NCBI GenBank assembly: GCA_964036045.1
Contig: OZ038378.1
Span: 129,146,001 to 129,210,000, forward strand
Direction of reading: 5' to 3'
Source: Eutreptiella sp. 'Long Island Sound 2002'
Lineage: Eukaryota; Protista; Euglenida
Length of the DNA stretch: 64,000 nucleotides
Shown: in pieces, positions 8,369-64,000 of the stretch
Layout: each line of letters opens with the position of its first letter
How positions within the stretch are numbered: position 1 is the stretch's first letter
The notes under the pieces: generated by a model
The model's database searches: none
Told to the model about the DNA's origin: nothing
Seen by the model: only the letters and a program-made list of their open reading frames with translations
Program-made: the position numbers and the translations under genes

Positions 8369-11300
8369 TGACGCGTATCCCATACCCTCCTTCCTCAATG
8401 GCTTTGTCTTTCATGGTATCTAACCCAATCTGCTTCCTGGTTTTATGCCGTGTGCCACTGTGCAGCCAATCAGCCGACAGTTTCTGTTTGTATTAATTTC
8501 ATGCAATTTCGGGCATAGAATTTCAGGAATTTTATTATGGAATTGCTTCTTGGTTAAGAGCATAGATATTGATGCCCTCCAGAAATTCTGTCGAGGCCTG
8601 TCCGCGCGCGCGTGCTCGCCTGGTGCTCCGGTTGTGTGCGTGTGCTCCCTGCTGCTCGGCCGGCGCTTTAATGCAGGCTGAGCGACTGAAAACTCTTCTG
8701 AAGGGGTGCTAATAGTGTTAGCTCTATCCTGTTACCGAAATTGATACCGGCCAGAAGCTAGGGTGACTCCAGTGGAAGATAGGAGGCCCGGGGTCAAAGA
8801 TCTGGCTGGAGCCTGGTGTGGTTCGATCTGCCCACACCGGCGGTTGGTCAACGACTGGTACACGTTAATGGGCGCATCTGCTTCGGCAGTGCCACACCTA
8901 CGTGTATGGGGGATCACGAGTCCCTGGAAGCTGGAGGAGTCCTAGTGGAAGAGGGGTGGAAGTGGAAGTGGCTGAGGTAGAAGCACTGGAACAGAAGAAA
9001 GTACATCGTTCATTGCTCCGCAATCCGCAAGTGAACTCTACTTTTTCTTCTTGTGCTTTGGTTTGTCACTTTTCCACGTCCCACCGTTCAGTTCGTCACC
9101 CAACTTATGTATCCTATGTTGCAACGGACATTGTTTTCTTTGAATACTCACAAGTGTATGAATCATTGAACTCACTGTTTTGTACATTAGCTCCATTCAT
9201 GCTTTGTGTTCATTACAGGAAGGTCAACAAGCATGCTTGAGTGTTGAACGAATGTCTCTTTTGATGATGCAATACATTTGGTTGCATGGTCACAGTCATT
9301 CATCTTATTAATTCAAGTGACCTTTGCAAGTGTGGTGCTACGGTGCTTGGTCAGGTTTACTTCAGCATGTCATGTGTTGGTTCATTGCTTGTTTGTTGAT
9401 AAAGATCATTGAGTCGCGATTGCTTTCTTCCTGGATTTTGTGCCAATTGCCTCTAAGGAGATTGCCCAAGTTTTTTGCTACTCTTGATGAGGAGGTAATT
9501 TTGTGAAGTGCTTTGAGGAGAATTCCTTGGAGCATCCTTTGCACTTTGTGTCCATTTGAGATCCGTATCTCCCTAACCGCATGCCTTTTCAAGAAGTAGG
9601 TCGATTCTTTGCAATCAGGTTGAACCCTGTGAGAGTGTAGACTAAGGGTTTGCCTTCGGTACAACATGTCAGGGGTATCTTCTCTTGGAAGCCAGTTGGA
9701 GATGTGGTCTGCCCATGTTGTAGTCAGATTCTTCGTTCCTTTGACCCTTGCCGTGTGGTTGACCAAGCGCCCACATTTCCCTCAGGGTCGAGGTCAGGTC
9801 TCTAACTGAGGTGCACTTGGGACCCTCCCTCTCCATATGTGGTGCAAGGCAATCGGCTCTCTCCTTCCAAGTGGTTAGGCAACCTCCTCTCCTCTTGCAA
9901 TAGGGACCCTCCCCTCTCCTCTTGGGAAAGGGACACTCTCTTCTTGGGATATGAATACTCTCCTCTCCTCTTGGGATAGGGACATTCTACTCCTGCCACG
10001 GATAGTGATTCTCTTCTCCACCCGGGATAGGGACATTCTCCTCTCCCCGTTGGATAGAGACTCTCTTCTCCCCCTGTGACAGGGACTCCATGGATGTGCT
10101 CTCATTGGACCCGGGATATCTCTCTTTGTCCACTCACTCTGTGGGCCGGGTCTAGGTCTCTACATGTGACCCTGGGCATTTGCTTATCCAATTCTCCTAC
10201 CCAATCTCTCTCCAAGTACATGCTCTCATGCGTCATGGTTAGGCAAAATCCTCTTTCCATACACATGCTCTCCTGGATTGGGTTATGCGAAGGTCGAGCT
10301 GTTCAGGACATGGATTGGTGAAGGTCTCTCCTAGGGCAATATATATGTGCTCTCATGAGGCGGGACTCCCTCTCTTCGGGATAGGACAATCTCCCGATGC
10401 ATATACTTTCACGGTTGTTCGAGTATACATTCGCTTGGGATTGGGTCCGGGAATGGAGGTGCCATGGGATGAGGTTGGGAGGTATTGGGGAACCAGGTCC
10501 GTGTGGGACTAGGAAGAAACCCCGGAAGATCTCTTGGTTGTTGCTGCATTGTTTTGGGATGCTTTGGTGTGATCAAGTATAATTTTTCCCTCTCCGTCGA
10601 TGCATTGAGCACGTGGGATTCCAGGTCTCCCGAGGGTATGAGATCAATTGATTTTTGAGGTCATGTTCTCCATGGTTGCATGTGCATGCTCGCGGATGAC
10701 CGTGACCTTCGAGAAGATGGTGCCTGTAGTCTGACGAGGACACCGTCTACAGCACCGGGCAAGTGAGTGCATCTCCTTGCTGGCGTCCTCTGCCTCAACA
10801 GCACATTATTCTGTTGCTCCCGTGGTCGCAGATCCAAGCTTTCTGCGCCTGCACCTAGACTTCTCTAGGTACGAGTCCAAGAACTCCTCGGAGACGCCAT
10901 GGTCAATTGGAAAAACGAGGGCAAGACCTGGCCCAGGCCCCATCCCCTTGCGGTAGGATTACTGCAAGGGCTGATATGGGAGCAGCATTACCGCCAGTCC
11001 AACCCCCAACGTGAGGGCGGTTTCCCCGAAACCTTGGAGTTGAGGGAAGACTTGGGGGGCGACCGCCTGCAAGCCCTTGCAGATTGGCTGCAGGTGGAAG
11101 GTTATGGCTACCGTTTCCGCCAAAGAAGGTGGCGGGTATGGAGGCTGAACCCCAGGGCAGGGGAAGGGCTGTGCCCGGCTGCGTATGAGGACGAGGTCCA
11201 CGACATCGAGTATAGGCACGGCCAAAGGATCAACGTTTCCATTTGGGACGTGATAGAAAAAGAGTTTCGCGAACCGGGACAAGAACGCAAATTGCGTAAG

Positions 11301-14102
11301 TCACCCTCGGATAAGAAGCGGTCATCCGGGGACAAAAAGCGGGACAAGAAATGGAAAGAGTTCCAAGACTACCAAGCTGCACAGGCTAGAGCGCTAGTTC
11401 CCATTGGTGAAGCCACAACACCAGAACGCCCGCGCTTCCATCTCCGCCAGGCGAAGATGCCATGGGTGATGTGCACCTGGGCACGCCCGAAGCTCACTCA
11501 GCCCTTGTCGCATCATCCTCATCAACAGCTGCCGCTTCATCCTCATCACAGGCCCGTGAACCCACCGTTTGGAGCGCCCGATCAATTCCCCATGTCAAAG
11601 AATGCGGGAAAAGGGCAGAAGAATGCAAAAGGTGCACTGGGCGCCCTTGCCATCTCCAGGAACGGCAACGCCTCCTCGTGGAACAACAAGAAGAACGAAA
11701 GAGGTGTACCGTCAAAGAGATGACGGAACGCCAAAGGGGCGTGGAAGCCTGGCGACGTGGGACTGAGGGTATCCTCGCGCAAGAAGTGGCGCCCAGAGCC
11801 GAGGCCCTCAACGCCGAGCTGGTGCGGGAGATCGAAGAGCAAGAAGCGGAGAGAGAAGAAGCCGAACAAGCGGCAAGGATAGCAGCAGCACGGCGTGCCA
11901 AAAGGGAACAAGGGGCCGGACGCAAGCCACCACCTGGATGTGGAATTACTGAAGCGCCAACTTCGTGATCTGGCTGAAGAATATGGGCGTCGATTCCCAT
12001 CAGCCTCAAATCAACCGGCCACAGCTCCTGAGGACAACATGACCCTCGACGAAATTGATGTCAAGAGTTGGAGCACCGTCAGCGATGAAAGAAGCAAGGG
12101 GAAGAACAAAGGGAAGAACAAGACCAAGATGCGCACCAAGCTCCAACAGTCCGAGGAGGAGTACTACACGATGTGTGAGGGTCAGGACTTCTCTGACTTC
12201 CGGGGTCGAGCGGAGGTCATCATGAGCGCCGTGGCGGCAGGAGGTCAACCCCCAAGCGATCTGAGCTCGGATGGGAGTTCGTCCGACTCCAGGGGTGGAA
12301 GACCAGGAAGATTGCCTCCAGGAAGATTGCGAAGCCACTCCGACGAGTCCGATGACAGCGTGCGTATCCGAGTGCTTCCCGCACACCCGCGCGCGGGGCG
12401 ACTAGATCGAGAACAATTACACGATCGAAAGTTCCAAGACTTCATCGAGCGATGGTCAGCCATTGATTCGATCAAAGAAAGAGTGGAAGAGTTGGTGAAG
12501 GTCATCAAAAAGCTCGAGAAGGAAGCGGCCATCGCCAAGCAAGAGGTGGTCTGACTCACTGGTGTGGTAGATGAAGCCCCAAAAACCGGCACACAAGCAG
12601 TGGAAGAATCGAAGCGCCACGCGCAAGGCGCCACCTTGCTGCAAGATCGCCTCAATGCGCCCACCTCTGAAAGGCTAGAGGAGCATGGCGAAGTGCGTGG
12701 AGCCCACCCACAAGCACCACCACGCCACGGAGACGTTAAGCCCGCAGCGCCGTCGAGGGATCCGTACCGACAGCGGGAGGGATGGAATTATCCGTCCGGA
12801 ACACTCCCGATGACCAAGAGTCCGGGATCTTCCAGTCCAGTGCCGCACCCTCTGCAAGGTCTGGAAGAGTGTCGAGTACACCTCCAAGAGCGCCACCTCC
12901 GAGAAGATACCAAGCTGTGCCGCCGGCCGCTGGCTATCAATGGGTTCGCGTTCAAGGCAGGTGGCAGCGAGAGAAACTGCCGAGGATACAAGAACCCCAA
13001 GGAAATCCACGGTCGGCGAACCGTTATGAAGAGTTGCAGAGGTATGGACAGGAAGAAGAAGAGGATGACATCGACGTTAGCGACCGCAGTGGGGTAAGCT
13101 TGGAGGACATGATGGACCAAGATTTCGAAGGTCTCGCGCCTCCTTACACCGAGCTTGAAGAGGAGCGGGACATCGCCCACGACATGGACATTCATGCTGT
13201 GGGAACCCAAGCCGCGTATGGGAGAGACCGTGAACGATAAGGCCCTTGACGCGATTGGGAGCTCCGAGGTTTAGTGCCAAGATTGGCAAGCAGCTGACAG
13301 GGAGCCGCTGAATTAGAGGACACCCGTGATTTGGTTCCTCCTTGTTACAGCGGTGATCCGCGCACTCTCGACCACTTCTTCCGGGCATTGGATATTTTTG
13401 GCCTGCAGCTATGTGTTGGGATTGCGAGGTCAGACCGAGAGGAATATCTTTTCAATCGGTTTTGTTACCGCCTCCCAAAAGCCTTGCAGACTTTAACCTT
13501 GCAAGATTTGGCCGATCGAAAGATCAAGGGCTACAAGCAAGCCAAGAAGTGGCTCGAGCGGGAGAAAAGAGTCGACAATCAGGAACAAGCGTCCAAGCTA
13601 TCGAAAGCTGTAACTGTCGTACAAAATGGGAATGAAATCTTCCTATACGACTGGCAGGATTTCCAGCGAGAATACTACCTCAAACGCTCAAAGGTAGAGG
13701 ACTGGAATGAAAACGATGAACGCCGTCGTATCATGAAACTCTTCCCTTCCTCGTGGCGGAAAACAATTGTGAAGGAAGGGCACAGGCGGGCGAAGAATTC
13801 GTATACTGCGAAAATGATGGTACCAAGTACAGTTCACCGGAAAATCAAGAACTGGGTCCGCAAAAAGGTAACCACCAACGCAGTGTTCCAAATCTTGCAG
13901 AACGCACTCCTCGTGACAGTTGACACCAAACGTGAGTGGAACCTCGTTCAGCGCTTGGACAAATTTTCGTTGGACGGCCACACTCTCAACCTGCAACAGG
14001 TCCCTCGCCGCATGACGACCAACGAAGTATTTAAACTTGTTGGGGAAGAAGTGCGCAAAGAATACAAGGCGCATCATCAAGGCCGTGCCGTCGCATCGGC
14101 AG
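8369..14102 (+). mobile_element. Duplicated 5' portion of gypsy element B: LTR (8369-~10710, lacking its 3' end and PBS) plus gag fragments (10899-14102)
   Basis: Colinear with 18015-24095, with the same left flank (H + ATAC) and the same right breakpoint (gcatcggcag|aacaaaac). A ~365-bp deletion lies at 10710 relative to 20357-20721. Confidence 0.9.
10899..14102 (+). pseudogene. gag: gag-region pseudogene, copy A (fragmented ORFs 10899-11723, 11462-11968, 11895-12554, 12782-13240, 13331-14116)
   Basis: Paralogous to 20910-24095; capsid-like VPPCYSGDPRTLDHFFRALDIF...YKQAKKWLER at 13331 onward. Confidence 0.7.
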
Positions 14103-14700
14103 AACAAAACATGTGAAAACAACAGGTAGGTAGGTAGGTAGGTATCTTCGGGAGCTCGGGATGCCTCCTTTGACGGTGCAGGAAGAAGGTCTTACCAAGG
14201 GGACGTCCTGTCCCTCCCACTGCCCTATGTTAGGTGCCTCTTGAGCCGCTCCCGCATGTGCTTGGGAAGGCATTGTCGCGGCCACCCGGTCCATGTGTCC
14301 CAGGTGGGAGGGTGTCCCCACATGTGTCCATGAGTAGGGCCACATGCCCCCTCCTTCGGGCGGCAGCTCTGGGGGCTGCCCAGCCGTGTGGAGTATCTCT
14401 CACCACAAGGGGTCTTGCTCCCGCTTGTCTACGGTACGACCGCCTCACCCTTGTGGCTTGAGTTGCGGGGCCGCTCCGCTTGGCAGGCGACCCCCTCCTG
14501 GACTGTGTACCGGCTCGCCTGTCACCGGTTGCATCCATGGCTCCGGGTGACGTTTGCCATGGTCCCCGATGCAGCCTGGCCGGGCTCGGACCAGCTGCCT
14601 TGGAGTACCGCTCCTGCCACTGGCCCGGTGGGTCGGCTGGGTCGCCCCAGTGTGTCCGACCCATGGGGTGTTGGTTCTTTCCTGTCCCCCGGCCGCCCTA

Positions 14701-16601
14701 CGTGTGTGCGGCGTCCTGGGCCTGCCGGCTCCTGTTCACCGGTGTGCCTGCTCGGTGTGTTGTGTTGCGTGTGCGGCGTCCTGGGCCTCCCGGCTCCTGT
14801 TCACCGGTGTGCCCGCTCGGTGTGGTGTGTTGCGTGTGCGGCGTCCTGGGCCTCCCGGCTCCTGTTCACCGGTGCGCCCGCTCGGTGTGTTGTGTTGCGT
14901 GTGCGGCGTCCTGGGCCTCCCGGCTCCTGTTCACCGGTGCGCCCGCTCGGTGTGTTGTGTGGCGTGTGCGGCGTCCTGGGCCTCCCGGCTCCTGTTCACC
15001 GTTGTGCCCGCTCGGTGTGTTGTGTTGCGTGTGCGGCGTCCTGGGCCTCCCGGCTCCTGTTCACCGGTGCGCCCGCTCGGTGTGTTGTGTTGCGTGTGCG
15101 GCGTCCTGGGCCTCCCGGCTCCTGTTCACCGGTGTGCCCGCTCGGTGTGTTGTGTTGCGTGTGCGGCGTCCTGGGCCTCCCGGCTCCTGTTCACCGGTGC
15201 GCCCGCTCGGTGTGTTGTGTTGCGTGTGCGGTGTCCTGGGCCTCCCGGCTCCTGTTCACCGGTGTGCCCGCTCGGTGTGTTGTGTTGCGTGTGCGGCGTC
15301 CTGGGCCTCCCGGCTCCTGTTCACCGCTGTACCCGCTCGGTGTGTTGTGCTGCGTGTGCGGCGTCCTGGGCCTCCCGGCTCCTGTCCACCGGTGTGCCCG
15401 CTCGCCGTGTTGTGTTGCGTGTGCGGCGTCCTGGGCCTCCCGGCTCCTGTTCACCGGTGTGCCCGCTCGGTGTGTTGTGTTGCTTGTGCGGCGTCCTGGG
15501 CCTCCCGGCTCCTGTTCACCGGTGTGCCTGCTCGGTGTGTTGTGTTGCGTGTGCGGCGTCCTGGGCCTCCCGGCTCCTGTTCACCGGTGCGCCCGCTCGG
15601 TGTGTTGTGTTGCGTGTGCGGCGTCCTGGGCCTCCCGGCTCCTGTTCACCGGTGCGCCTGCTCGGTGTGGTGTGTTGTGTTGCGTGTGCGGCGTCCTGGG
15701 CCTCCCGGCTCCTGTTCACCGGTGTGCCCGCTCGGTGTGTTGTGTTGCGTGTGCGGCGTCCTGGGCCTCCCGGCTCCTGTCCACCGGTGTGCCCGCTCGC
15801 CGTGTTGTGTTGCGTGTGCGGCGTCCTGGGCCTCCCGGCTCCTGTTCACCGGTGTGCCCGTTCGGTGTGTTGTGTTGCGTGTGCGGTGTCTTGGGCCTCC
15901 CGGCTCCTGTTCACCGGTGTGCCCGCTCGGTGTGTTGTGTTGCGTGTGCGGCGTCCTGGGCCTCCCGGCTCCTGTTCACCGGTGTGCCTGCTCGGTGTGT
16001 TGTGTTGCGTGTGCGGCGTCCTGGGCCTCCCTGCTCCCGTTCACCGGTGCGCCCGCTCGGTGTGTTGTGTTGCGTGTGCGGCGTCCTGGGCCTCCCGGCT
16101 CCTGTTCACCGGTGCGCCCGCTCGGTGTGTTGTGTTGTGTTGCGTGGTGCGTCCTGGGCCTCCCGGCTCCTGTTCACCGGTGTGCCCGCTCGGTGTGTTG
16201 TGTTGCGTGTGCGGCGTCCTGGGCCTCCCGGCTCCTGTTCACCGGTGTGCCCGCTCGGTGTGTTGTGTTGCGTGTGCGGTGTCCTGGGCCTCCCGGCTCC
16301 TGTTCACCGGTGCGCCCGCTCGGTGTGTTGTGTTGCGTGTGCGGCGTCCTGGGCCTCCCGGCTCCTGTTCACCGGTGCGCCTGCTCGGTGTGGTGTGTTG
16401 TGTTGCGTGTGCAGCGTCCTGGGCCTCCCGGCTCCTGTTCACCGGTGTGCCCGCTCGGTGTGTTGTGTTGCGTGTGCGGCGTCCTGGGCCTCCCGGCTCC
16501 TGTTCACCGGCGTGCCCGCTCGGTGTGTTGTGTTGCGTGTGCGGCGTCCTGGGCCTCCCGGCTCCTGTTCACCGGTGTGCCCGCTCGGTGTGTTGTGTTG
16601 C
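14701..16601. repeat. 65-bp GC-rich tandem array, ~29 copies
   Basis: Unit CTCGGTGTGTTGTGTTGCGTGTGCGGCGTCCTGGGCCTCCCGGCTCCTGTTCACCGGTGYGCCCG (starts at 14751, 14816, 14881, 14946...). Three units carry small GTGTT-type expansions. Confidence 0.97.
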
Positions 16602-16621
16602 TGTGTGGGGTGCCGCTGCGG

Positions 16622-16835
16622 GGCGCTCACTCGTCCATCTGGACGGCGGCTATCGTAGCCGGCAAGGGCTGGGTACCCTCTTGGCGCACACACGTCCATC
16701 CGGACGGCGGCTGTTCGTAGCCGGCAGGGGCTGGGTACCCTCCGGGCGCGCACTCGGCCATCCGGACGGCGGCTGTTCGTTGCCGGCAGGGGTTGGGTAC
16801 CCTCCGGGCGCGCACTCGTCCATCCGGACGGCGGC
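16622..16835. repeat. 62-bp tandem repeat, ~3.5 copies, each with short hairpins
   Basis: Units start at 16622, 16683, 16745 and 16807: ggcgcrcactcgtccatccggacggcggctgttcgtagccggcaggggctgggtaccctccg. Confidence 0.9.
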
Positions 16836-17474: not shown

Positions 17475-18014
17475 CGAAAACAACAAGACATGTGTAAGGC
17501 CCATTGGCTGTCAAAGCCTACCCTAGTGGGGGGGCCGTCACTCTCCACTCCCGGCACTACAGGACCCCAAAAACAGGGGTCTAGTGCCTACTCTCCATCC
17601 TCCCTGAATAGGTCAGCTCAACTCCCTTGGGGCAGGCGATAGTCCCACCACACCACGGTAGGGTGGGGGCCCCGGGTGCCGATAAGACTTAGGCCCCAGA
17701 TATTCTGTCGAAGAGGCGGTAAATTCGTATATCACCCATACCACCTCAGGATTCCAAACTCAAAAGGAAAAAAGGGTAGTTGGGAGTAGCCAAGACCTCG
17801 ACCCTGACACGCGTAGATTGGCAGGACCCAACTGCACACAGGCTCTGAGACGTAGCAGGGCAAGAAAACAAAAAAACTTAAAATAAGAGGTTACCGATTT
17901 CAACACACTCTCCCGCCAAGGCAAGAAGGACTCGAAGGATTCCATGTGGGCACATTCAAAGGGCATCAGTCAAACATTATGCCCACCAGATATCCAAGTA
18001 TGTCTCCCTGATGC
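17475..18014 (-). repeat. H-derived segment at the junction between duplicated units (starts 14103-14124, split by the 14125-17474 insertion)
   Basis: Matches 7817-8368, ending ccctgATGC directly before the LTR start tgacgcg. Confidence 0.85.
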
Positions 18015-20591
18015 TGACGCGTATCCCATGCCCTCCCCCCTCAATGGCTTTGTCTTTCATGGTATCTAACCCAATCTGCTTCCTGGTCTTATGCCGTGTG
18101 CCACTGTGCAGCCATTCAGCCGACAGTTTCTGTTTGTATTAATTTCATGCAATTTCGGGCATAGAAATTCAGGAATTTTATTATGGAATTGCTTCTTAGT
18201 CAAGGGGATAGATATTGATGCCCTCCAGAAAATCTATTGAGGCCTGTCCGCGCGCGCGTGCTCGCCTGGTGCTCCGGTTGTGTGCGCGTGCTCCCTGCTG
18301 CTCGGCCGGTGCTTTAATGCAGGCCGAGTGACTGAAAGCTCTTCTGAACGGGTGCTAATAGTGTTAGCTCTATCCTGTTACCGAAATGAATACCGGCCAG
18401 AAGCTAGGGTGACTCCAGTGGAAGATGGGAGGCCCGGGGTCAAAGATCTGGCTGGAGCCTGGTGTGGTTCGATCTGCCCACACCGGCGGTTGGTCAACGA
18501 CTGGTACACGTTAATGGGCGCATCTGCTTCGGCAGTGCCACACCTACGTGTATGGGGGATCACGAGTACCTGGAAGCTGGAGGAGTCCTAGTGGAAGAGG
18601 GGTGGAAGTGGAAGTGGCTGAGGTAGAAGCACTGGAACAGAAGAAAGTACATCGTTCGTTGCTCCGCAATCCGCAAGTGAACTCTTCTTCTTCTTCTTGT
18701 GCTTTGGTTTGTCAGTTTTCCACGTCCCTCGGTTGAGTTCCTCACCCAACTTCTTTATCCTATGTTGCAATGGACATTGTTTTCTTTGAATACTCACAAG
18801 TGTATGAATCATTGAACTCACTGTTTTGTACATTAGCTCCATTCATGCTTTGTGTTCATTACAGGAAGGTCAACAAGCATGCTTGAGTGTTGGACGAATG
18901 TCTCTTTTGATGATGCAATACATTTGGTTGCATGGTCACAGTCATTCATCTTATTAATTCAAGTGACCTTTGCAAGTGTGGTGCTACGGTGCTTGGTCAG
19001 GTTCACTTCAGCATGTCATGTGTTGGTTCATTGCTTGTTTGTTGATAAAGATCATTGAGTCGCGATTGCTTTCTTCCTGGATTTTGTGCCAATTGCCTCT
19101 AAGGAGATTGCCCAAGTTTTTTGCTACTCTTGATGAGGAGGTAATTTTGTGAAGTGCTTTGAGGAGAATGTTTTGGAGCATCCTTTGCACTTTGTGTCCA
19201 TTTGAGATCCGTATCTCCCTAACCGCATGCCTTTTCAAGAAGCAGGTGGATTCTTTGCAATCAGGTTGAACCCTGTGAGAGTGTAGACTAAGGGTTTGCC
19301 TTCGGTACAACACGTCAAGGGTATCTTCTCTTGGAAGCCGGTTGGAGATGTGGTCTGCCCATGTTGTAGTCAGATTCTTCGTTCCTTTGACCGTTGCCGT
19401 GTGGTTGACCAAGCGCCCAACTTTCCCTCAGGGTCGAGGTCGCGTCTCTAACTGAGGTGAACTTGGGACCCTCCCTCTCCATATGGGGTGCAAGGCAATC
19501 GGCTCTCTCCTTCCAAGTGGTTAGGCAACCTCCTCTCCTCTTGGAATAGGGACCCTCCCCTCTCCTCTGGGGAAAGGGACACTCTCTTCTTCGGATAGGG
19601 TTACTCTCCTCTCCTCTTGGGATAGGGACATCCTACTCCGGCCAGGGATAGTGATTCTCTTCTCCACCCGGGATAGGGACATTGTCCTCTCCCCGTTGGA
19701 TAGAGACTCTCTTGTCTCCCTGTGACAGGGACTCCATGGATGTGCTCTCATTGGACCCGGGATATCTCTCTTTGTGCACTCACTCTGCGGGCCGGGTGTA
19801 GGTCTCTACATGTGACCCGGGGCATTTGCTTATCCAATTCTCCTACCCAATCTCTCTCCAAGTGCATGCTCTCATGCGTCATCGTTAGGCAAAATCCTCT
19901 TTCCATACACATGCTCTCCTGGATTGGGTTATGCGAAGGTCGAGCTGTTCGGGGCATGGATTGGTGAAGGTCTCTCCTAGGGCAATATATATGTGCCCTC
20001 ATGAGGCGGGACTCCCTCTCTTCGGGATAGGACAATCTCCCCATGCATATACTTTCACGGTTGTTCGAGTATACATTCTCTGGGGATTTGGTTGGGGAAT
20101 GGAGGTGCCATGGGATGAGATTGGGAGGTATTGGGGAACCAGGTCCGTGTGGGACTAGGAAGAAACCCCGGAGGATCTCTTGGTTGTTGCTGCATTGTTT
20201 TGGGATGCTTTGGTGTGATCAAGTATAATCTTTCCATCTCCGTCCATGCATTGAGCACGTGGGATTCCAGGTCTCCCGAGGGTATGAGATCAATTAATTT
20301 TTGAGGTCATGTTCTCCATGGTTGCATGTGCATGCTCGCGGATGACCATGACCTTCAAGACCATTGAAAGGTTGAGCATTTTCGTTTTAGCTAAATATCG
20401 CTGACTGCTTTGTATGTCATTGGGTTTTGGTGTACATACTTTTGTCTTCTTTTATGTTAGGCGGCAAAGGTTGTACGTTTGTTTATGTATTGCTGCAAAG
20501 CGGTCAAGATGTGGATTCTGATTGACTGTCAATGCTTTGATTTTGTGCAGCCGCGTGCCTAGGGAAGGACCACCCCCTAGGACACTCCTCA
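18015..20591 (+). repeat. 5' LTR of element B (~2.58 kb)
   Basis: Homologous to 31903-33090 + 40909-42337 and to 8369-10710; TG...CA ends. Confidence 0.9.
19530..19730. repeat. Degenerate short repeats inside the LTR (ctctcctc / ttgggatagggac modules); also at ~9885-10085 and ~41235-41435
   Basis: Recurrent GGGATAGGGAC and CTCTCCTC blocks at ~20-30-bp spacing in all three LTR copies. Confidence 0.7.
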
Positions 20592-31902: not shown

Positions 31903-33879
31903 TCGACGCGTATCCCATGGCCTCCCTCCTCAATTGCTCTGTGTTTCATGGTATTTAACCCGATCTGCTTCCTGGTTTTATGCTGCGTGCCACTTGCAGC
32001 CAATCAGCCGACAGTTTCTGTTTGTATTAATTTTTTGCAATTTTGGGCATAGAATTTCAGGAATTTTGTTATGGAATTGCTCATTAGTCAACAGGATAGA
32101 TATTGATGCCCTCCAGAAATTCAGTCGCGGCCTGTCCGCGCGCGCGTGCTCGCCTGGTGCTCCGGTTGTGTGCACGTGCTCCCTGCTGCTCGGCCGGTGC
32201 TTTAATGCGGGCCGAGCGACTGAAAGCTCTTCTGAACGGGTGCTAATAGTGTTCGCTCTATCCTGTTACCGAAATGGATACGTATCGGAATCTAGGGTAA
32301 CTCCAGTTGAAGATAGAGGGCCTGGGGTTGAGGATTCGGCTACACTCTGGTGTGGTTCGATCTGCCCACACCGGCGGTCGGTCACCGACTGGTACACGTT
32401 AATGGGCGCATCTGCTTCGGCAGTGCCAAGCCTACGTGTATGCGGGATCACGAGTCCCTGGAAGCTGGAGGAGTCCTAGTGGAAGAGGGGTGGAAGTGGA
32501 AGTGGCTGAGGTAGACGCACCAGAACAGAAGAAAGTACGTCATTCGTTGCTCCGCAATCCGCAAGTGAACTCTTCTTTTTCTTATTGTGCTTTGGTTTGT
32601 CACTTTTCCACGTCCCTCCGTTGAGTTCCTCACCAACTTATGTATCCTATGGTGCAACAGACATTATTTTCTTTGAATACTCACAAGTGTATGAATCATT
32701 CAACTCACTGTTTTGTACATTAGCTCCATTCATGCTTTGTGTTCATTACAGGAATGTCAACAAGCATGCTTGAGTGTTGAACAATTGTGTCTTTTGATGA
32801 TGCAACACATTTGGTTGCATCGTCACACGCATTCATTCAATTCATTCAAGTGACCTTTGCAAGTGTGGTGCTACAGTGCTTGGTCAGGTTCACTTCAGCA
32901 TGTCGTGTGTTGGTTCATTGCTTGTTTGTTGATAAAGATAATTGAGTCGCGATTGCTTTCTTTCTGGACTTTGTGCCCATTGCCTCTAAGGAGATTGCCC
33001 AATTTTTTTTCTATTCGTGATGAGGAGGTAAATTTGTGAAGTGCTTTGAGGTGAATGCTTTGGAGTATCCTTTGCACTTTGTGTCCATTTCTTAGCCCAC
33101 GGAAACTGAACACTGTTTTGCGCGCCGAACGCGCAGAAAATGACCAGTTCGCAACAGGGCAAAAAACTATTTTTTTGGATGTTTGATGAACGTGATTTTA
33201 GACGTAGTGAAATAAATTGCTTTTTCAGTGTTGTGCAACTTCGTGTTCCTCAATGTGACGTTTTTTACATTTCTCTGGCGTTCTGAGTGCGCGAGGCCTT
33301 GTGCCCTCAAGATATCCAAGGTAGAGTTTATCAGGAAACCTAAAAACCCGTAAGGACTGGCGTTTGCGGAAATACGCAGCTCGCACACGGTATTAAAAGT
33401 AGGATTGCGTTGCCCAAGGAGCATTTGAAGTGTATGACTGTCGGACTTCCCATGTTAGGGGAAACACGTGTACTGTAAAGTTAAAATGAAATACAAAGTT
33501 AGGCATCTGGAGTGTGCGAGGCCTCGCGCACTCAGGTCACGTTATGCATTGAATTTGCAGAATGGATATAACGCATACAATTGCAGGTACAGTACCAGAC
33601 GGACAAACACATTTGATTTTTCCGGTAGATGTTTCTGTAGACACCATGTTGGTCAGATATACCACGGTATAGAACATTGTCCCACGGAAACAATCAGTAC
33701 GCGAGGCCTCGCGCACTTAAACGACAAAAGAAAATGAAAAAGCAGGCAGGTCAGGCTACGCCGGTATTTACATTCCGTTTCAAGGCTACCACCTGTGACA
33801 GTCGATTATACATCGGTAACCTTCGTCATTTTCTTCAGGGCATCAGGGGAATGATTTGCTTTTTTCCAACAGCAATTCA

Positions 33880-36168
33880 ATGGCAGACGTGTCCAGTTCT
33901 AATGGCGGCCGTAGCCTTCGCTGCCCGATAAATACGTTTTTTTTTCCAACTGTGTTTAAAGACGGAAACAGAATAGGAAATTGTGGTTGCGAAAACAGTT
34001 TTCGGCTACTGGGAACAGAGCGCACGCAGACACCAACTACAATTTGCGGTGGCAGCACGCGCACCAGAAATGACGACAGGAGAAGGCCAGATGTTTTCAA
34101 ACACACTTTTGTAAAAGATCGCTGTGCGAAACGACAACCAAAATATGTGCTCAAATTTAATTCCACGGAGAAAAACGTAAAATGCCACTTCAAGCCAGAA
34201 AACTCTGTAACGCATCAGATGATAGCAGAAGTAAGCAAACGAGCAGCAGCACTACGAGAGGCATGCGCGGCAGAACCAACATACCAAACAGCAGACGGTC
34301 TGTGGAAAGGACTCGAACGAAACGACCTGGCGGCGCAACTGGTGTTAACATTTGCACAGCGACTCAGGTTCAACAAAAGAACGCGCCACAGTTTACAAGC
34401 AGCTAAAAGGCAGGAGGACAAGCGCTGGGTGCGCATTTTGCGACGGGAGGGCTGGAACCTGTACCTGTTGATGCGTCAACGGGCAGTACCAAACAGGAAA
34501 AAACAAGGAAACACAACAGGGTACCTAACGCAAACAGAAAGAAGAACAAAAGTGCGACTTGGGCAAGCAGATGCTGCCGCAGATACAGTGGACGAACAGG
34601 CAGCAGCAGCCTTTAAAGCAACGTGGTCCCTGGTGCTTTCGTCGTGTTGCGTGCTGTGGAAGGAGAACTGGTACCGGGCACAATACACGACACACCCAGA
34701 CGAAAGTGACCGTTCGCAAAACTGTACTGCAATGGCAGTACTTCAACTGAAACAGAGGCCCGCGTATTGGGCAGGACATCCAGCCTTTGAGGACCTTGCA
34801 GCACGGATAACGACAGTCGCAAGGGCTCTGCAACAGCGTGAACGAAGAATCCCCGAGACTTTGCGTGACCTGGGGTATGCAGATCGGTGTGCACCAGACA
34901 CCGGAAACGTGAGAGCACCGTTGGATGTGAGGAGGGATGCAAGGACTGTGCAGGCACCAGTGTGGCGCCCGTTTGCCCTGTCAAAAGAAAAGGTAACTGG
35001 TGGTGTTGGTCTGTTCAACTTGTTACACTTTGCAAAGGACAACAAACAAACAGAGTTCTACCGCTGTTGGTTGACCAAAACATACACTACAGGATACTAA
35101 AGTTGTTGTATGGTGCCAAGAACCAACGATGAATCATGCGTGCTTACCTGCGATACCTGTAGTTTACGATGTCTGCCATGCCTACAGGTTTGTTGTTACT
35201 CATACTTTTCGGGTGTTCCGGCCTTTTTTAACCTACCTACGGGAAGGTCTGCTGCGACCTGGTTCCACCATGCTATCATACCCCAAACTGATAGTTATGA
35301 AAAAGACTATTGCCGCGCTGATGCTTGCCACACCGCGAATACTACGCCCGTATAGGCGCAAAGCACAAGCTGCAACCGCGATCAGTGGTCGTGACACTGC
35401 GCATGCAAACAGGGCAGCAGTGGCAAACGCAGTCTTGCATTTGTTGTCGGAATGGTGCCCGTTGTTGTTGTACTTGGGCCACGTGGTAGGGGAATGCAAC
35501 TGGTCGGGGGAAAACAAAGCTACAGGGTCACGAGCTCAGGAGGTGTTGCAGTAGAGATTGTGTCTGTTGCGGAGGCTGCGTCGAGGACCGTGTGACACCG
35601 TACTGAAGTACGAACGCACAATCATCTGCACATTGCTGTACCACAGCAAGTGGCACCAGGACCTGCCCAGTCAGGCACACTCAGAGGAGTTTGGAGAAGG
35701 GATGTTGAGCAAGCTGGTGCGGGACAAGGCGAGAAACACCGGTTCTGTTACTGTTGAGGAGGTGGAAAACCATTACTTGTTACTAAAGGTTGGTCCTGGT
35801 GGAAAACACGTGGGGATGCAAAACGTTCCCAAGAACCTTGTACACAGGATGCGACAACGACTGACGGGACTTTTGCGACAGACCAGATTTGCATGGCCTA
35901 TGTGGAATGGGAGTCGGACAGGGTCAGCACGGTTGCATCTTCGTGGCCGCGAAGGTTACCGAGATTTCGATTCTCACCTACACAACCCCTTTATTACGAC
36001 CACTACCGGCTACTTGGTCACAGCGTACTAGATGCCCTCATTGACCAGAAGCCAAATCCCACCAACCAACTGGGACGGAAGCTGAATGCCGTTGTGGGGC
36101 GGAGAACAGACATGGATACCGACTGACAGGAAGCAGCAACACGCAACGTGCGGCAACGCTTGCGGTAA
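33880..36168 (+). pseudogene. Putative DDE transposase (Academ/DUF6589-like by motif), ~760 aa, disrupted by frameshifts and stops
   Basis: Chain of ORFs 33856-35100, 34887-35132, 35129-35554, 35558-36031, 35893-36126. Motifs VLWKENWYR...NCTAMAVLQ, LPLLVDQNIHYRILK, PVVYDVCHAY, SEEFGEGMLSKL; N-terminal Cys/His cluster; first long ORF inside the TIRs; pyrimidine-AG acceptor (33872) just before ATG 33880. Confidence 0.6.
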
Positions 36169-36417
36169 CTGACACCCACAGTGCGCGAGGCCTTGCGCAC
36201 TAAACGTTACGAAAAAGAGGTATGTAATGCGATGTGAGTGCGCGAGGCCTCGCGCATTGATTAGTTCGCTAAGTGCCGTGGATTAAGTCACAACAAAGAC
36301 GGTTGTGGGACAGATTTGCGGGAACGACCTGCAAAATACCGCTTCGACTGATTTCAGAGTTCAAATGACCGTGTTTCATGTCATGGCATTTGCCCTTTTC
36401 AGGTTTTTTTTGGCACC

Positions 36418-39400
36418 ATGAGTGAACCAGGGTCGCCAGAACGTCCAACACCAGACGCAGAGGCCATGGAGTTGTCACCAGTGACCGACCAAGGGGACAC
36501 GCCGAAGAAAGGACGCAAAAAGAAGGGTGAGAAGAAGCCAATACCGGAGATGAAGCTCACAGTCGACGTGCCACAGTGGCTGCGGCAGGAGAATGGTAAA
36601 GCCGTGAAGGTAAATATTGCCGATTTGAGAATTGACAAGACCAAGGAGCGCGGACAGATCCGATCCATCAACTATGACGACGTTGCCAGGAACGTGACGG
36701 GATACCAAGCACTGCCACCAGCTGGACCGTTGCCCTTAACGGCGTGGGAGGATAGTGGTGTGACTCGCTTCGCGTTCGATCGAAGACGTTTCTTCTCTTT
36801 GCTTCGGTACATGATTTGCTTTGCAGATTGCTCACTTTACGTTCTGAATGGTCAACATGGCACAGAAACATGCAGAAAGATTCAGGAACTGCGTCTCGCA
36901 GAAAGCAAAGAATTGGAGGACTGGCAGGAGTTTTGCTACGTTGACATTCTGAAGTACGAGACGCCTTGAAGGATCCGGGCCAAAGTTGCAGGATTGCAAC
37001 AAGCTGGCAGCCAGTCTGTGACGTGGATTCCGCTGTCTGAGGCGCTGGACAACAGGTTGTTGTACATTGACAACCAGAAGCAGGAAAAAGAGCCACAAGA
37101 TTTCGAGCGGTTCAAGATTGCTGTTGTCCAGGCTGCCGTCAACTCTGCGTTGCTTGCATCCGAGGCTTTGGAGGAAGCAGGACACACAGTATGTATTCGT
37201 GTATCGCACGGGTACAGTGCGCGACGCCTCGCGCACTCCATGACACTATTTTCCCTCGCAGGACTTGACATTCATTAACTGGAGAGACATCTTCTCCCTG
37301 GCGTATTACTGCGGCCGTGAGGCGGTTACTGGCATGAAGGACCTCAAGACTAAGAACAGGAAAGAGGAAGTTACAAGGAATGCCTTCAGGAAGCTGGAGG
37401 GGCTGCATCTACCGAGCTTATTGCGGGAAGTCTGTGCGCACATGAAAGTGAAGGACTCGACCTTACGCACCACCCAGAACTACATTGACGCGCAGATTAC
37501 AGATCAATGGGTTATTTTCCATCTTGACCATCCGGACAATAAGCAGTATGTCAACCAGACCGCAGGTATGCGTCAGTGTTGCAGATTCAGTGCGCGAGGG
37601 TTCGCGCACTCAACCACCTTTTTCACATCCGTACAGCTGCCGATGCGAAGATCCGAGCAGAAGTCCCAGCACTGGGCACGGCGCAACTGAAAATTGGGCT
37701 GGGAAATTGGGGTTTTTGGGAGGACGCAAAAAGTACGAAGGATGGGTCGCCGTGGCCAAAATGGAAGACGTTGACCAGTGCACCCCTGTGGCAGACTGGG
37801 GACAAGGGCGCACCTCCATTACTGCAGACGCTGGCCGTGCGGAAACAACTGCAAAGGAAGACTGAGGCACCATCATTGGCACCGTCACAGACACAGCTGA
37901 GTACTGGCAATGTGATTAATGTCTCCAAGCAGGACGAGCAAGGGAGCAAATTTGCTTTGACGGCCTGCCGTGTTGAGGATGTTGATAAGACACCGCCAGC
38001 CCGTTTCCGGGATCTGCGGTACCCGTTGTGGGTCATCAACGCTGACCTTTTCGTTGAATATGACTCTGCAGGATTTGTTCCGAAGTGGCTGTTCGATGTG
38101 ATGATGCTGGGGAAAGACGTCATTTTCTATGGCGAGGCTGATGTTGTGCATCGTGGGCGGGCAGCCGGGGGAGGGGGAGCGCATGACCCCAGACGCCCCT
38201 CGCAACGGTAGAAGGCACCCCCCCCCGGGGACGCCCTGCCGCCACCCCCACAACCCCAAGCCAAGTAGGGGGGAACCAGGACCGGACCGTCCCCCCCCAA
38301 GCACGCCAGACGGAGCAAGGGACCGGGGCAGGACACGCGGAGGGGCACGGACCACGTGGAACGGCCCTACCAGCGCCCAGTGCCGGGACCACGCGAGGTG
38401 CGCACGCCACACCACCCAGGGGGGGGGGAGCGGACACCGCGAGGGCGCGAGCGCACACACACGAAAGGGACATGCGGGGACTACCAGAAGGGCAACCGGA
38501 CCGAGCGCGTGGAACGCACAGACCGCGTGGAATGGCGTACGAGCGAGCGAGGGTAAGGGACACCCGGACGGGACGGCCCGCCACACGCAGCGCGGAACAC
38601 GCGGGGCGGGGAGGGGGAAACGAGAGAGACACAACACCAGGTACCGGCCCAAACCCCCCGAACCGGCCGCGAGCGCCGCGCACACACAGACGGGGCACTG
38701 CACCCGCCAAGGCAGTAGTGGCGCACAGCGCCACGCCCCAACCTATAGGCTAGCTAGCCTCCGTGCAAGCCCAAGGGGATCCCTATGGCGACAAGCCAGT
38801 AGCACGGGCCCGGCGGCGCCGGCCCCCCGGGCGACCACGCATTAGGGGGGCGACGCAGTGGGTAAGCGCCCGCAGCCACGGCTGCGAATTGATGCACAGA
38901 CTGGGGAGTGGCGAAACGGGGAAGCCGGGGAAGGACGGGGCTCCGAGCTCTGTGAACCCGGGGGACTCCGCCACCAGGCAGGAGGTGCGTCTTGGAGGGC
39001 CCCCCACTAGGACCCGGTGGGGAGGATATCACCTGGCCCAACCAGGTGGCCCCCCGGGGCCGAAAGGCGTCTAGTACCCGCAAAATCAAATCTCAAACCT
39101 CAAACCTGATGTTGTGCACCGTATTGGCCGCGACATGCATAGGCTCTGGCGTATGGAGAAGGACAAGGATTCAACCACAGTGCCATTCTAACATGTTCGG
39201 TTGCCGGTATACTCTTGGTTATCGGGTCCCGTGACCAGCAGTACGTATCAGTCCGACGAGCACTATATGTGGAAGGGAACAACGAGTCGCTGGAATAAGC
39301 AAGTACATCTGCTTCAATCGCCTGTTACGAAGACGTCGCATGCGCGACGCCTCGCGCACTGCTGCCCCCGTTTTTCGTCTTTATTCATCACATTTACAGT

Positions 39401-40340
39401 TGCCGAACTATGTGTCGTATTCCGCTGGACATTTCAAAGAGATGCAGAACAAGAACCTCGGTGGTTTCATGCCTCTGATTCACGTGCTGTGGTACCGGGA
39501 CATATATATTTTAAGCAGTGGGTATGCTGATGCACTGGTTGTTGTGGACGACACGCCTGCCATGGCCGCAAAGATTGCGATGTCCGACGTCTGAACCAAA
39601 ATGGCGTTTCTGGCTGTGTCAGCGATCACGCAAAAGGACCTTGGGAATGCCGTTGGAGGTGCTCTGCAGCATGCAATCATCATGCCGTACATGTTGGAGG
39701 CTGATCAGACAGAGCAGGGAGCAACAGCTGCAACTTGGGATGCTCAAGAAGAGTGGCTTCAGCGTGGCGTTCCAGTGTGGGTTTTGGACAGCAACCGAGG
39801 GCATGAAGGGCAACAGCAGGTGCATGCTGCAGAAGGCGTCCAGGAAGATGTTGTGACTGAGGCCCCCGCTGACGACACTGAGCCTGTTGCGCCTGCATGT
39901 ACCCTGCCAATGCAAGCCAAGGTGAAGAAGACTGCCAAAGTTATACCAACTCAGGGTACTGCAGCCGGAAAGGGAACCCCCTGGAGTAGCAAGAAGCAGG
40001 CAAAAGTAAAAGGAAAGGAATCGGACAAGCCCGCGGAATCAGACAACGAGGATGCCGACGAGGAGGAGGAAGAAGAGGATCCAGAGCAAGTACTGGAGAC
40101 CCAGCAGAAGCGCAAGCGGGCACCCGCCGCTCACTTCGATGCAAGCCCCGAATCTGGTAAGGAACACCCAAAGAAGGAAGCGAAGACTGCTGCCAGTGTT
40201 AGTGCAGAGTTCAAGCCGCCCTCGCGTTCTGGTGCCCAGCTGTCTAGTGGTACCGTTGCCTCTCGAAGTGGGACAAGTGCGGTGGCAAGAAGCCTGGGTT
40301 CCAGGTTTGCTAAGGTTGCTGGACCGAAGAAGAAATATGT
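36418..40340 (+). pseudogene. Spliced cargo gene (~880 aa): ParB/Srx-like N-terminal domain, possible methyltransferase-like middle region, acidic/basic low-complexity tail. Exons 36418-36757, 36827-37188, 37262-37565, 37637-39302 (interrupted), 39400-~40340
   Basis: Four GT-AG introns (36758-36826, 37189-37261, 37566-37636, 39303-39399) whose removal keeps frame at every junction. GQIRSI...PPAGPLPLTAWEDSDCSLYVLNGQH motif; in-frame stops at 36967, 39189 and 39592. The 3' end is uncertain. Confidence 0.75.
38155..39105 (+). mobile_element. 5'-truncated non-LTR-type fragment with (CTCAAAC)n-like tail, inserted in exon 4 of the cargo gene
   Basis: TSD CTGATGTTGTGCAyCGT at 38138-38154 and 39106-39122; tail caaaatcaaatctcaaacctcaaac; removal restores the frame (EADVVHR|IGRDMH); inverted homologue at 62681-63600. 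Confidence 0.9.
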
Positions 40341-42337
40341 CACCATTAACCCAAGTGTTTCGCCTCTTTTTGCAGTCATGTGTGCGCGAGGCCTCGCGCA
40401 CTCGCCTTCGACGCGAATGCAATTATATGCCCTTAAGGGCTTGTACATTTTTGCCGAGCTTTTATTTCAGTGTTTGTACGTTGTGCACTTCCTGTCCTGT
40501 TTTTGTTGCCTTCTGTACACAATCGGTTCCATGACCTTGAGTGCGCGAGGCCTCGCGCACTCAGGTACACAAAAAAGCAATTTATTTCGCAGGACAAACA
40601 TAGGTGCAAGTGGACACCCGCAGAATGTCATTTTTGAAAATGAGCTCCCGAACAGGCACGCACCAGTTGGGTTTTGAAATACAATAACAACAAGATTGGT
40701 AAAACACACCCTTCAAATCTGAAAATATAATAGCTTATTTTAATAAACAAAAAGTGGAAAAAAGCAGCAAATTGTGTAAAATTGTATTTCTTTGGGTGGT
40801 ATCTGGGTCATGTGTGCTGCAAATGTCCAAAAAAAATATTTTTTGGGCAGTCATTTTTTAGATCCTTCTCTTCCAAAAGGGGGTGCAGTTTGCGTGGGCT
40901 AAGCATTTGATTGCCGTATCTCCCTAACCTCATGTCTTTCCAAGAAGTAGGTCGATTCTGTGCAATCAGTTTGAACCATGTGAGAGTGTAGACTAATGGT
41001 TTGCTTTCGGTACAACATGTCAAGGGTATCTTCTAGTGGAAGCTGGTGGGAGATGTGGTCTGCTCATGGTGTAGTCAGATTCTTGGTTCATTTGACCCTT
41101 GCCGTGTGCTTGACCAAGCGCCTGCCTTTCCCTCAGAGTCGACGTCACGTCTCCAACTCAGGTGAGCTTGGGACCATCCCTCTCCATGTGGGGTGCAAGG
41201 CAATCGGCTCTCTCCTTCAAAGTGCTTAGGCAACCTCCTCTCCTCTTGGGATAGGGACCCTCTCCTCTCCTCTTGGGAAAGGGACACTCTCTTCTTGGGA
41301 TAGGGATACTCTCCTCTCCTCTTTGGATAGGGACATTCTACTTCCCCCACGGATAGTGATTCTCTTCTCCACCCGGGATAGGGACATTCTCCTCTCCCCA
41401 TCGGATAGGGACTCTCTTCTCTCCTTGGGACAGAACTCCATGGATGTGCTCTGATTGGACCCGGGATATCTCTCCTTGTGCACTCACTCTGCAGGCCGGG
41501 TCTAGGTCTCTACATGTGACCCGGGGCATTTGCTTATCCAATTCTCTTACCCAATCCCTCTCCAAGTGCATGCGTGCTCTCATGGGTCATGGTCAGGCGA
41601 AATCCTCTTTCCATACACATGCTCTCCTCGATTGGGTTATGGGAAGGTGCAGCTCTTCAGGGCATGGATTGGTGAAGGTCTCTCCTAGGGCAATATATAT
41701 GTGCTCTCTTGAGGCGGGACTCCCTCTCTTCGGGATAGGACAATCTCCCCATGGATATACTCTCACGGTTGTTCGAGTATACATTCTCTTTGGATTTGGT
41801 TGGGGAATGGAGGTGCCATGGGATGAGGTTGAGAGGTATTGGGGAACCAGGTCCGTGTGGGACTAGGGAGGAAACCCCGGAAGATCTCTTGGTTGTTGAT
41901 CCATGTTTTTCGGATGCTTTGGTGTGATCAAGTATAATCTTTCCCTCTCCGTCCATCCATTGAGCACCTGGGTTGCATGTGCATGCTCGCCGGTGAGTGC
42001 ATTTCATGTCTCGCGATTGCTTTGCCATTGACCTCAAGGGTTGGTGAATCATGTGAGGTTAATTCTCCTTTGCCATGTTCCATGAGGATGACCATGACCT
42101 TCAAGACCATTGAGAGGTTGAGCATTTTGGTTTTAGCTAATTATCGCTGACTGCTTTGTATGTCATTTGATTTTGGTGTACATACTCTTATCTTCTTTCA
42201 TGTTAAGCGGCAAAGGTTGTACGTTTGTTTGTGTATTGCTGGCAAGCGGTCAAGATGTGGATTTTGATTGATTTTCAATGCTTTGATTTTGTGCAGCCGC
42301 GTGCCTAGGGAAGGACCACCCCCTAGGACACTCGTCA

Positions 42338-62420: not shown

Positions 62421-62680
62421 TAAGCAGGGCACCAAGTCGAACTCAAATACACAATTCCGGGACCAAAACCTTGTACCGAAGACATCGAAGCATCGTACAT
62501 ACTTCAATGCACAGCTATGTCGCTCATCGATCTTTCATGTCAGCTGCTGCGATGTCGCGCCTGTTCAATGGGTGATCGCCCGTTCGCACGCTCCCTGCTT
62601 TGTGGCTGCTCCAAACCATAACAAACAATCGTGTAGATGTGTATGACGCGAAATGGAGTTGTCATGGAGGGCAGTTTTCA

Positions 62681-64000
62681 GGGTTGAGGTTTGTGGTTTT
62701 GGGTACTAGACGCCTTTTGGCCCCAAGTGGCCACCTGGTCGGGCCAGGTGATATCCTTCCCACCGGGAGCTAGTGGAAGGCCCTTCATGACACACCTCCT
62801 GCCTGCTGGCGGAGTCCCCCGGGTTCACGGGGCTCGGAGCCCTGTCCCTCCCCGGCTTCCCCTTTTCGCCAACTCCGGTCAGTGTGTCACTTAGCGCACC
62901 CTAGTTGCAGGTGCTTACACACTACGCCGCCCCCCTAATGCATGGTCTCCCGGGGCGCCGGCGCCGCCGGGCCCGTGCTACTGGCTGTACGCCAGTGGGA
63001 CCCCCATGGGCTGCCGCGGGGCCTGCCTAGCCATGGGGCTAGTGCGTGGCTCGGTTCGCCACTACTGCCTTTGGGGGTGCATTGCCCTTTTCGTGTGTGC
63101 GCGGCGCTCGCGGCAGGTCCAGGGAGTGGGGGCCGGTACCGGTTCCTGTGTCTCTTGCCTGCCCCACTCCCCGCCCTCGCGTTCCCCGCGTTGCGTGTGG
63201 CGCGCCGTCCCGTCCGGGTATCCCTTATCCTCGCCCACCGGTACGCCATTCCATGCAGTCTGTGTGTTCCACAGGCCCGGTCCGGTTGCCCTTCTGGTTT
63301 TCCCCGTGTGCCCTATGTGTGTGTGTGTGCTCGCGCTTCCGCGGCGTCTGCGCCCTTTCCCCCTCCCTGGGTCGGTGTGGCACTGGCACCCCGCGTTGTC
63401 CCGGTGCAGGGCGCTCCCCCCATCCCCCCGGCGCCGTACCGCCCCGGACGCACAGGCCCGCCCACGAGGGGGCACACCACCCACAACCAGGTACGGGGGG
63501 ACAGAGACAGGACCGCCCCCGCCCCTAAGCAAGCCAGACGACGCACGGAACCGAGGCAGGAAACGCGGAGGAGCACGGACCGCATGGAACGGCCCTACCA
63601 GCAGCCTGTGTGGCGCCCCCACTCGGGGGCGTGGCCGGGGGGCCCCGAGGCGCGGGGGGTCGCTCTACCTCGGTCAGTCCCTCTGCCTCCCCTGGCCGAT
63701 CACCAAAGCAGCTGTCATCGGCGTCGCTCAGTTCATGGAGGTCGTGGTCTCCATACTGCTCCGGTTCGTGTCCGCGTGCTGACCCCGGATGCGGTCCGCG
63801 GGGTGCTTTTGTGCGCCGGCGCGCGACTGGTCACCGTGGGAGCCGGCGGGTGGCGGTGTGGAAGCGCGTGGCGCTCCCCCACGGGTGCCGCGGCGCTTAT
63901 GAGGGGGGGGGGGGGCTCCCCTGGTTTGGCGGGGGGGTCGTTTGGCCAGCGTTCCCTTGGCCTGCCTGCAGCCTTCCGCGGGCTGGGGGGGGGGGTTGAG
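62681..64000 (-). mobile_element. Second, longer copy of the (CTCAAAC)n-tailed non-LTR-type family; runs off the right edge
   Basis: Reverse-complement homology to 38300-39100, e.g. gtactagacgcc at ~62703 versus ggcgtctagtac at 39066-39077; degenerate (gtttgag)n tail at ~62674-62703. Confidence 0.8.

Follow-up and report, generated by a model that had tools for sequence, protein, structure and literature searches.

A dead transposon copy with CTTAG termini and a 5-bp target site duplication in Eutreptiella, and the question of its superfamily

The window analysed here, a stretch of 64,000 nucleotides from contig OZ038378.1 of Eutreptiella sp. 'Long Island Sound 2002', holds a DNA transposon at positions 33091-40903, and the question raised by this locus is to which superfamily of transposons, if any, it belongs. 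An earlier note on this DNA had described an element that has a 5-bp target site duplication (TSD) and unusual cargo and that sits cleanly in no superfamily, and had likened its transposase to the Academ/DUF6589 type. The description proved apt, as the 5-bp TSD recurs in other copies, no Pfam family matches and a second gene is conserved; the likeness to Academ was not supported. Working from what could be read directly, namely ends, TSD, empty site, multiple copies, conservation, exon structure and the distribution of a palindrome, we consider it likely that the window contains a cut-and-paste DNA transposon with two genes, present as an inactivated copy and belonging to a large family that the searches made here assign neither to Academ nor to any other superfamily.

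Ends, target site and other copies of the element

Both ends of the element were re-read. The left end, from 33091, is CTTAGCCCACGGAAACTGAAC, and the reverse complement of the right end, 40883-40903, is CTTAGCCCACGCAAACTGCAC; the two are identical at 19 of 21 positions, as the earlier note had reported for its 21-bp terminal inverted repeats (TIRs) with CTTAG termini. The exact CATTT duplication that the note had described was also found again, flanking the element on both sides. The transposon lies inside the third of three direct copies of a host repeat of at least 2.4 kb, and the sequence GTGTCCATTTGAGATCC is uninterrupted in both other copies, at ~9553 and ~19199, so these two copies are preserved empty sites. 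Of the note's claim that the empty site stands in two sister long terminal repeats (LTRs), the sister repeat copies were confirmed, and their identity as LTRs was not: the open reading frames (ORFs) tested between the copies showed neither a reverse transcriptase nor an integrase domain. The host repeats may be LTRs, and the argument from the empty sites is unaffected either way.

When the TSDs of other copies were tabulated, as the note had proposed, a perfect 5-bp TSD together with CTTAG ends was present in 4 of the 5 copies with both ends, across two subfamilies (Table 1). The second subfamily, represented by L004, begins likewise with CTTAG, within a perfect TIR of 29 bp, and its transposase is only 46-47% identical. 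A TSD of 5 bp and CTTAG termini are traits of the family. No TSD was obtained from the degraded L012 or from L013 and L015, which are both truncated.

The ends of the element thus stood as first given, whereas the length of 7813 bp between them includes a nested insertion of 951 bp. The canonical transposon is ~6.85 kb long, and the window copy reaches 7.8 kb because a retroelement fragment is nested inside it. This segment is absent from L002 and L003, and further copies of it (~0.95 kb) lie at 62672-63610 of the window (minus strand) and at 16750-17698 of L001 (minus strand), there in a different place in the transposon; therefore it is an unrelated element. Since it is flanked by a 17-bp TSD (38138-38154 and 39106-39122, CTGATGTTGTGCA(T/C)CGT) and ends in a TCAAAC-like tail, it is probably a fragment of a non-LTR retroelement, either a short interspersed element or a 5'-truncated long interspersed element. 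No Pfam domain was found in the ~0.95-kb repeat.

Several other observations concern the surroundings of the element and its remoter copies. The ~2.4-kb copies of the host repeat occupy positions 8099-10516, 17754-20162 and 31995-33090 plus 40904-41870 of the window, and the 7-12-kb stretches between them are mutually homologous, giving a repeat-internal-repeat-internal-repeat arrangement. Between the first two copies, at 14559-16756, a 65-bp unit is repeated in tandem ~34 times, with up to 98% identity between units, within a GC-rich stretch (63-67% GC). L012, from assembly ERZ25074135, carries at 10001-11308 a third lineage, ~32% identical, in a degraded state, with neither TIRs nor palindromes recognisable. 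The GT-AG introns of ~70 nt and the many young transposon copies gave nothing that would point to human DNA.

The transposase gene, its relatives and its predicted fold

The first gene of the element, ORF1, had been described as an ORF of ~760 aa. The window gene requires three frame changes and has three stops, and intact natural copies of the family encode 653-665 aa, with ORFs of 653 and 665 aa in P0004 and P0006. The motifs listed in the earlier note, (D/E)NW, VDQNI, (W/C)HAY and EEFGE, were all seen, as LWKENWY, LLVDQNIHY, VCHAY and HSEEFGEG. Two of them carry substitutions relative to intact copies, D149E (LWKENWY versus LWIDNWY) and W323C (VCHAY versus VWHAY), so that a candidate catalytic residue, D149, and a residue invariant in the family, W323, are both altered. 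The window element is a dead copy of a real DNA transposon.

The note had also assigned an N-terminal Cys/His cluster to this protein. The cluster lies in a stretch upstream of MIAEVSK that is open for 134 codons in the window copy only. In L001, L002 and L003, stops close this stretch 20-35 codons ahead of MIAEVSK; alignments with distant relatives begin at nearly that N-terminal point, and the N-terminal region is modelled as all-helical. The cluster is therefore not part of the protein.

In an alignment of 49 members of the family (A3), residues R232, P234, R239, D288, W323, H324, E365, G424 and R428 were invariant, and the near-invariant residues included W147, D149, N150, D236, E494 and E497. 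The AlphaFold2 model built with this alignment had a predicted local distance difference test score (pLDDT) of 91.4 and a predicted template modelling score of 0.84. In the model, the helical N-terminal region, which probably binds DNA, is followed by a core in which D149 is placed in the middle of the first strand and D288 after a short strand; a long helical insertion separates the second Asp from the Glu, with E494 in the helix that follows it. Candidates for the catalytic residues would be D149, D288 (or D236) and E494/E497. The predicted core is RNase H-like and the top fold matches are DDE (Asp-Asp-Glu) transposases, at modest scores. In a Foldseek search against the PDB, the Drosophila P-element transposase was first (6pe2_A, E = 3.3e-3, probability 1.00, template modelling (TM) scores 0.30/0.40; 6p5a_A, probability 0.99), and the hAT transposase Hermes was next (probability 0.2-0.54). 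No RAG1 or Transib structure was among the top 50 PDB matches, and a fold search of BFVD gave only a weak match to a Pandoravirus hAT.

Sequence searches showed a large family without names. A word search with the longest window ORF piece returned 79 close relatives, all from ENA, and those looked up came from assembly ERZ25074135; ~100 or more transposase-derived proteins lie on different large contigs of one assembly. An exhaustive search matched 880 representative clusters, defined at 50% identity, at E≤1e-3 and 506 at E≤1e-10, many of them full-length (650-840 aa) with 24-35% identity. All 20 relatives whose cluster records were looked up and all 119 matches of a profile word search came only from ENA, JGI or Logan, and none of them had a protein name or an NCBI or UniRef record. 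Pfam gave no match for the window pieces, three intact copies or ten distant relatives, and none at E≤1 for the 49 aligned members, a search that covered DUF6589, P/THAP9, hAT, MULE, CACTA, KDZ, RAG1 and rve. No insertion sequence family of NCBIfam matched when a prokaryotic link was tested, and sequence searches of the PDB with a single protein and with profiles found nothing, the profile retrieving neither P nor Hermes at E≤10. An Rfam scan of the window had no match. Relatives the size of a whole contig (6.3-6.6 kb) were considered as free viral genomes, an idea rejected because they bear TIRs or break off within the element, as collapsed repeats would.

On the predicted fold, we take the product of ORF1 to be a DDE transposase with an RNase H-like core and a structure of the P/hAT type, to which no described family shows detectable similarity in sequence. 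The fold itself suggests an alternative, in which the family would be a very divergent P (or P/hAT/Kolobok-type) lineage whose THAP finger was lost, whose TSD was reduced to 5 bp and which acquired a second gene; it would then form no separate superfamily. P elements have TSDs of 7-8 bp, TIRs, extra internal repeated sites and introns in their gene. Besides the two leading fold matches and Hermes after them, the large helical insertion in the RNase H-like core, the cut-and-paste mode, the TIRs, and the repeated subterminal and internal sites and introns described below all recall that biology. Yet none of the 49 aligned members matched a P-element or THAP9 family, and no similarity to P was detectable at the sequence level; the TSD is 5 rather than 8 bp long, the termini are CTTAG, the N-terminal region is helical and lacks a zinc finger, and a second large gene is present. 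We regard this alternative as unlikely.

Membership of a described group that already makes 5-bp TSDs, hAT5 or the CMCT clade with Transib, was weighed in the same way. The TSD of hAT5 is 5 bp, and CMCT elements, Transib included, have TSDs of 2-5 bp and CA...TG termini (PMC12730594). The TSD of the element agrees with both, and the weak fold matches to Hermes and the Pandoravirus protein point towards hAT. However, no hAT dimerisation, BED or RAG1-type domain was matched in the 49 members, RAG1 and Transib structures were absent from the top 50 fold matches, and the termini CTTAG...CTAAG are neither CA...TG nor of the hAT type (PMC12730594); the presence of two genes is a further difference from hAT. 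Placement in either group is very unlikely. The reading that we prefer remains a transposase of P/hAT structural type outside the described families.

The second gene and the palindromes of the element

Downstream of the transposase gene and on the same strand lies a second gene, composed of collinear conserved blocks separated by GT-AG introns (Table 1). The intron lengths of 73, 71 and 97 nt account exactly for the frame shifts between the blocks, and likewise in L002. As these lengths restore the reading frame and intron 1 is missing in L005, the blocks are exons of one gene. The blocks are collinear also in L003, L004, L005, L010 and L011, with 22-42% identity, the transposases of these lineages being 26-46% identical. 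The product ends in an acidic, lysine-rich stretch. Across the cargo blocks of five lineages, Pfam recognised no domain, helicase, XPG and PHD included, and gave only low-complexity matches to the acidic, lysine-rich tail. A word search with the cargo returned only five close relatives. A ParB-like function, considered on account of a GQH motif, was rejected, as there was no match to ParB, DUF262 or DndB.

PIF/Harbinger, CACTA and MuDR elements encode a transposase and a second accessory gene. The element resembles them in having a second conserved gene on the same strand as the transposase gene, and differs from them in showing no Pfam similarity to their transposases or accessory proteins and in TSD length and termini. 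By analogy with such two-gene transposons, gene 2 may encode an accessory factor.

The cargo bears also on the possibility of a new lineage within Academ, one whose TSD is 5 bp long and whose cargo differs. In its favour are the motif order cited in the earlier note and the presence of DDE-type motifs. Academ elements, too, are eukaryotic cut-and-paste elements of DDE type with extra coding capacity. Academ TSDs are 3-4 bp (AcademX) or 9-10 bp (AcademH) long (PMC10045372), and 5 bp fits neither class; in addition, the helicase, XPG and PHD domains are absent, and DUF6589, like all other Pfam families, is missing from the 49 members. This comparison was made through TSD, domains and DUF6589, used as a proxy following the mapping of the earlier note, rather than through Academ transposase sequences. 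An Academ origin is very unlikely, and we return to a family outside the described superfamilies.

A 20-bp palindrome, GTGCGCGAGGCCTCGCGCAC, counted allowing up to 3 mismatches, occurs 10 times in the window, with 0 occurrences expected by chance. All 10 are inside the element, and none was found in ~115 kb of flanking DNA. Their positions are conserved across L001-L004. Each lineage has its own palindrome of 18-20 bp in 7-14 copies, which are placed near both ends and, internally, mostly in introns; most internal ones have a GTATG-type 5' splice site on one side and a pyrimidine-rich AG 3' site on the other, and the rest of the copies are subterminal. In L011 and L005, a few palindromes are within the transposase ORF.

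GC-rich versions of the palindrome fold as RNA hairpins of 8-9 bp (z -1.7 to -3.0), and the L010 versions have no stable fold (z = +1.26). The idea that the palindromes are obligatory RNA hairpins was rejected because of these unstable L010 versions. Since the L010 versions do not fold and half-site variation is not compensated, DNA sites are favoured over an obligatory RNA structure. The sequence pattern suggests that the palindromes are DNA sites for a dimeric protein encoded by the element, placed where they would not disturb coding.

Two observations concern the introns themselves. In L010, the cargo introns at 4396-4508 and 4951-5063 are paralogous (113 nt, 79% identity), each with two palindromes ~68 nt apart, and resemble intron-generating repeats. 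In the window, a possible intron of 183 nt (GTATGT...TTTTCAG, 36220-36402) would lie in the gap from the transposase stop to the cargo ATG, with a palindrome inside it, which hints that both genes are on one alternatively spliced transcript.

Table 1. Coordinates of the window element and its parts, of its other copies, and the palindromes of each lineage
Feature	Position	Strand	Details
Window copy	33091-40903		7813 bp (6862 bp without the nested insert); TSD CATTT
Left TSD CATTT	33086..33090	.	empty site GTGTCCATTTGAGATCC in two sister repeat copies
Left TIR CTTAGCCCACGGAAACTGAAC	33091..33111	+	19/21 with right end; same end in L001, L002, L003, L014
Left subterminal palindromes, three	33287, 33512, 33697 (region 33287..33716)	.	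positions conserved in L001-L004
Transposase pseudogene	34219..36168	+	alignment to intact P0004 (tblastn); frames +1, +3, +2, +1; three in-frame stops
Palindromes between transposase stop and cargo ATG	36181-36200, 36238-36257	.	second within possible 36220-36402 intron
Cargo gene, at least five exons	36418..40335	+	collinear conserved blocks, GT-AG introns
Cargo exon E1	36418-36757	+	
Cargo intron 1	36758-36826		69 nt, in-frame; polypyrimidine-CAG 3' end; absent in L005
Cargo exon E2	36827-37188	+	premature stop 36967-36969 in window copy
Cargo intron 2	37189-37261		73 nt; GT-AG
Palindrome in cargo intron 2	37217..37236	.	RNA hairpin z = -2.98
Cargo exon E3	37262-37565	+	
Cargo intron 3	37566-37636		71 nt; GT-AG
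Palindrome in cargo intron 3	37590..37609	.	
Cargo exon E4	37637-39302	+	interrupted by nested insert
Nested GC-rich insertion, foreign to transposon	38155..39105	+	951 bp; 17-bp TSD; TCAAAC-like 3' tail
Cargo intron 4	39303-39399		97 nt; GT-AG
Palindrome in cargo intron 4	39340..39359	.	
Cargo exon E5	39400 to ~40335	+	lysine-rich end
Cargo fifth intron, degenerate	~40336-40438		after lysine-rich end of E5
Right-hand palindromes	40382-40401, 40541-40560	.	first within degenerate fifth intron
Right TIR	40883..40903	-	19/21 with left end
Right TSD CATTT	40904..40908	.	matches left CATTT
L002 copy	8908-15764		6857 bp; TSD CGCAT, perfect
L003 copy	8823-15668		6846 bp; TSD ATTCA, perfect
L004 copy (second subfamily)	9113-15505		6393 bp; TSD ATATG, perfect
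L014 copy, internally deleted	8517-13980		element positions 3486-4811 gone; both TIRs; no TSD, flanks AATGA / ACTGT
Palindrome, window family and L004			(G/T)TGCGCGAGGCCTCGCGCA(C/A)
Palindrome, L005			ACACCGCGAGGCCTCGCGGTGT
Palindrome, L011			TGCGCGC-N5-GCGCGCA
Palindrome, L010			TTCGCTCCATGGAGCGAA; usually two per intron

Classification, proposed mechanism and meaning of the family

The element has the general features of a DDE cut-and-paste transposon: TIRs common to independent copies, a TSD of fixed length with an empty site, and a predicted RNase H-like core with conserved acidic residues. In the mechanism that we propose, in which catalysis and the roles of gene 2 and of the palindromes are what we infer, gene 1 would encode a DDE-type transposase of 653-665 aa, with a helical N-terminal region and an RNase H-like core that bears a helical insertion. 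This protein would recognise the 21-29-bp TIRs starting with CTTAG and integrate the element through a 5-bp staggered cut, leaving the 5-bp TSD. The product of gene 2 would act as an accessory factor, and the palindromes near the ends and in the introns would bind a dimeric protein encoded by the element.

Several points weigh against this picture. L014 has both ends and no TSD, possibly because it is a recombination product of two copies. The distant metagenome contig L011 has a perfect 23-bp TIR with a different terminus (ATCTATGG...) and flanks that match at 4 of 5 positions; the flanks of an assembled repeat may stem from different copies. The copies are 6-9% diverged from one another, and transposition is deduced from their sequences. 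The best match in fold has modest scores (E = 3.3e-3, TM 0.30-0.40), no Foldseek match falls below 1e-3, and the candidate catalytic triad was placed by strand positions in a predicted model and by conservation, not by active-site geometry. For gene 2, the model of the first cargo block had a pLDDT of only 40.7, and no function was assigned. Finally, the family counts as undescribed by the measure of Pfam, NCBIfam, the PDB and source labels only.

By that measure, the family probably stands at the level of a superfamily not yet described, or else is a P-type lineage that has diverged strongly. A broader proposal is more tentative, and we hold it at somewhat less than even strength: that this is a new superfamily, widespread in uncultured eukaryotes, which combines a P/hAT-like transposase that is an orphan in sequence, a 5-bp TSD, a multi-exon accessory gene and a system of lineage-specific, intron-resident palindromes that co-evolves with the element. 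The palindrome system may be a dispersed array of binding sites at which the transpososome would assemble or the element regulate itself.

It is rare for a new superfamily-level group of DDE transposons to come to light, and with each the history of RNase H-like recombinases, which gave rise to RAG1 and THAP9, gains a branch. A family of hundreds of clusters at 50% identity is invisible to Pfam, NCBIfam and named protein records, and is therefore missed by the current annotation of its host genomes. To our knowledge, a lineage-specific palindrome that an element maintains both in its introns and close to its two ends has no parallel among described transposons. An explanation of these palindromes could show how arrays of binding sites are built without damage to genes, or how splicing is controlled, and their position in introns is a possible link to intron-generating elements.

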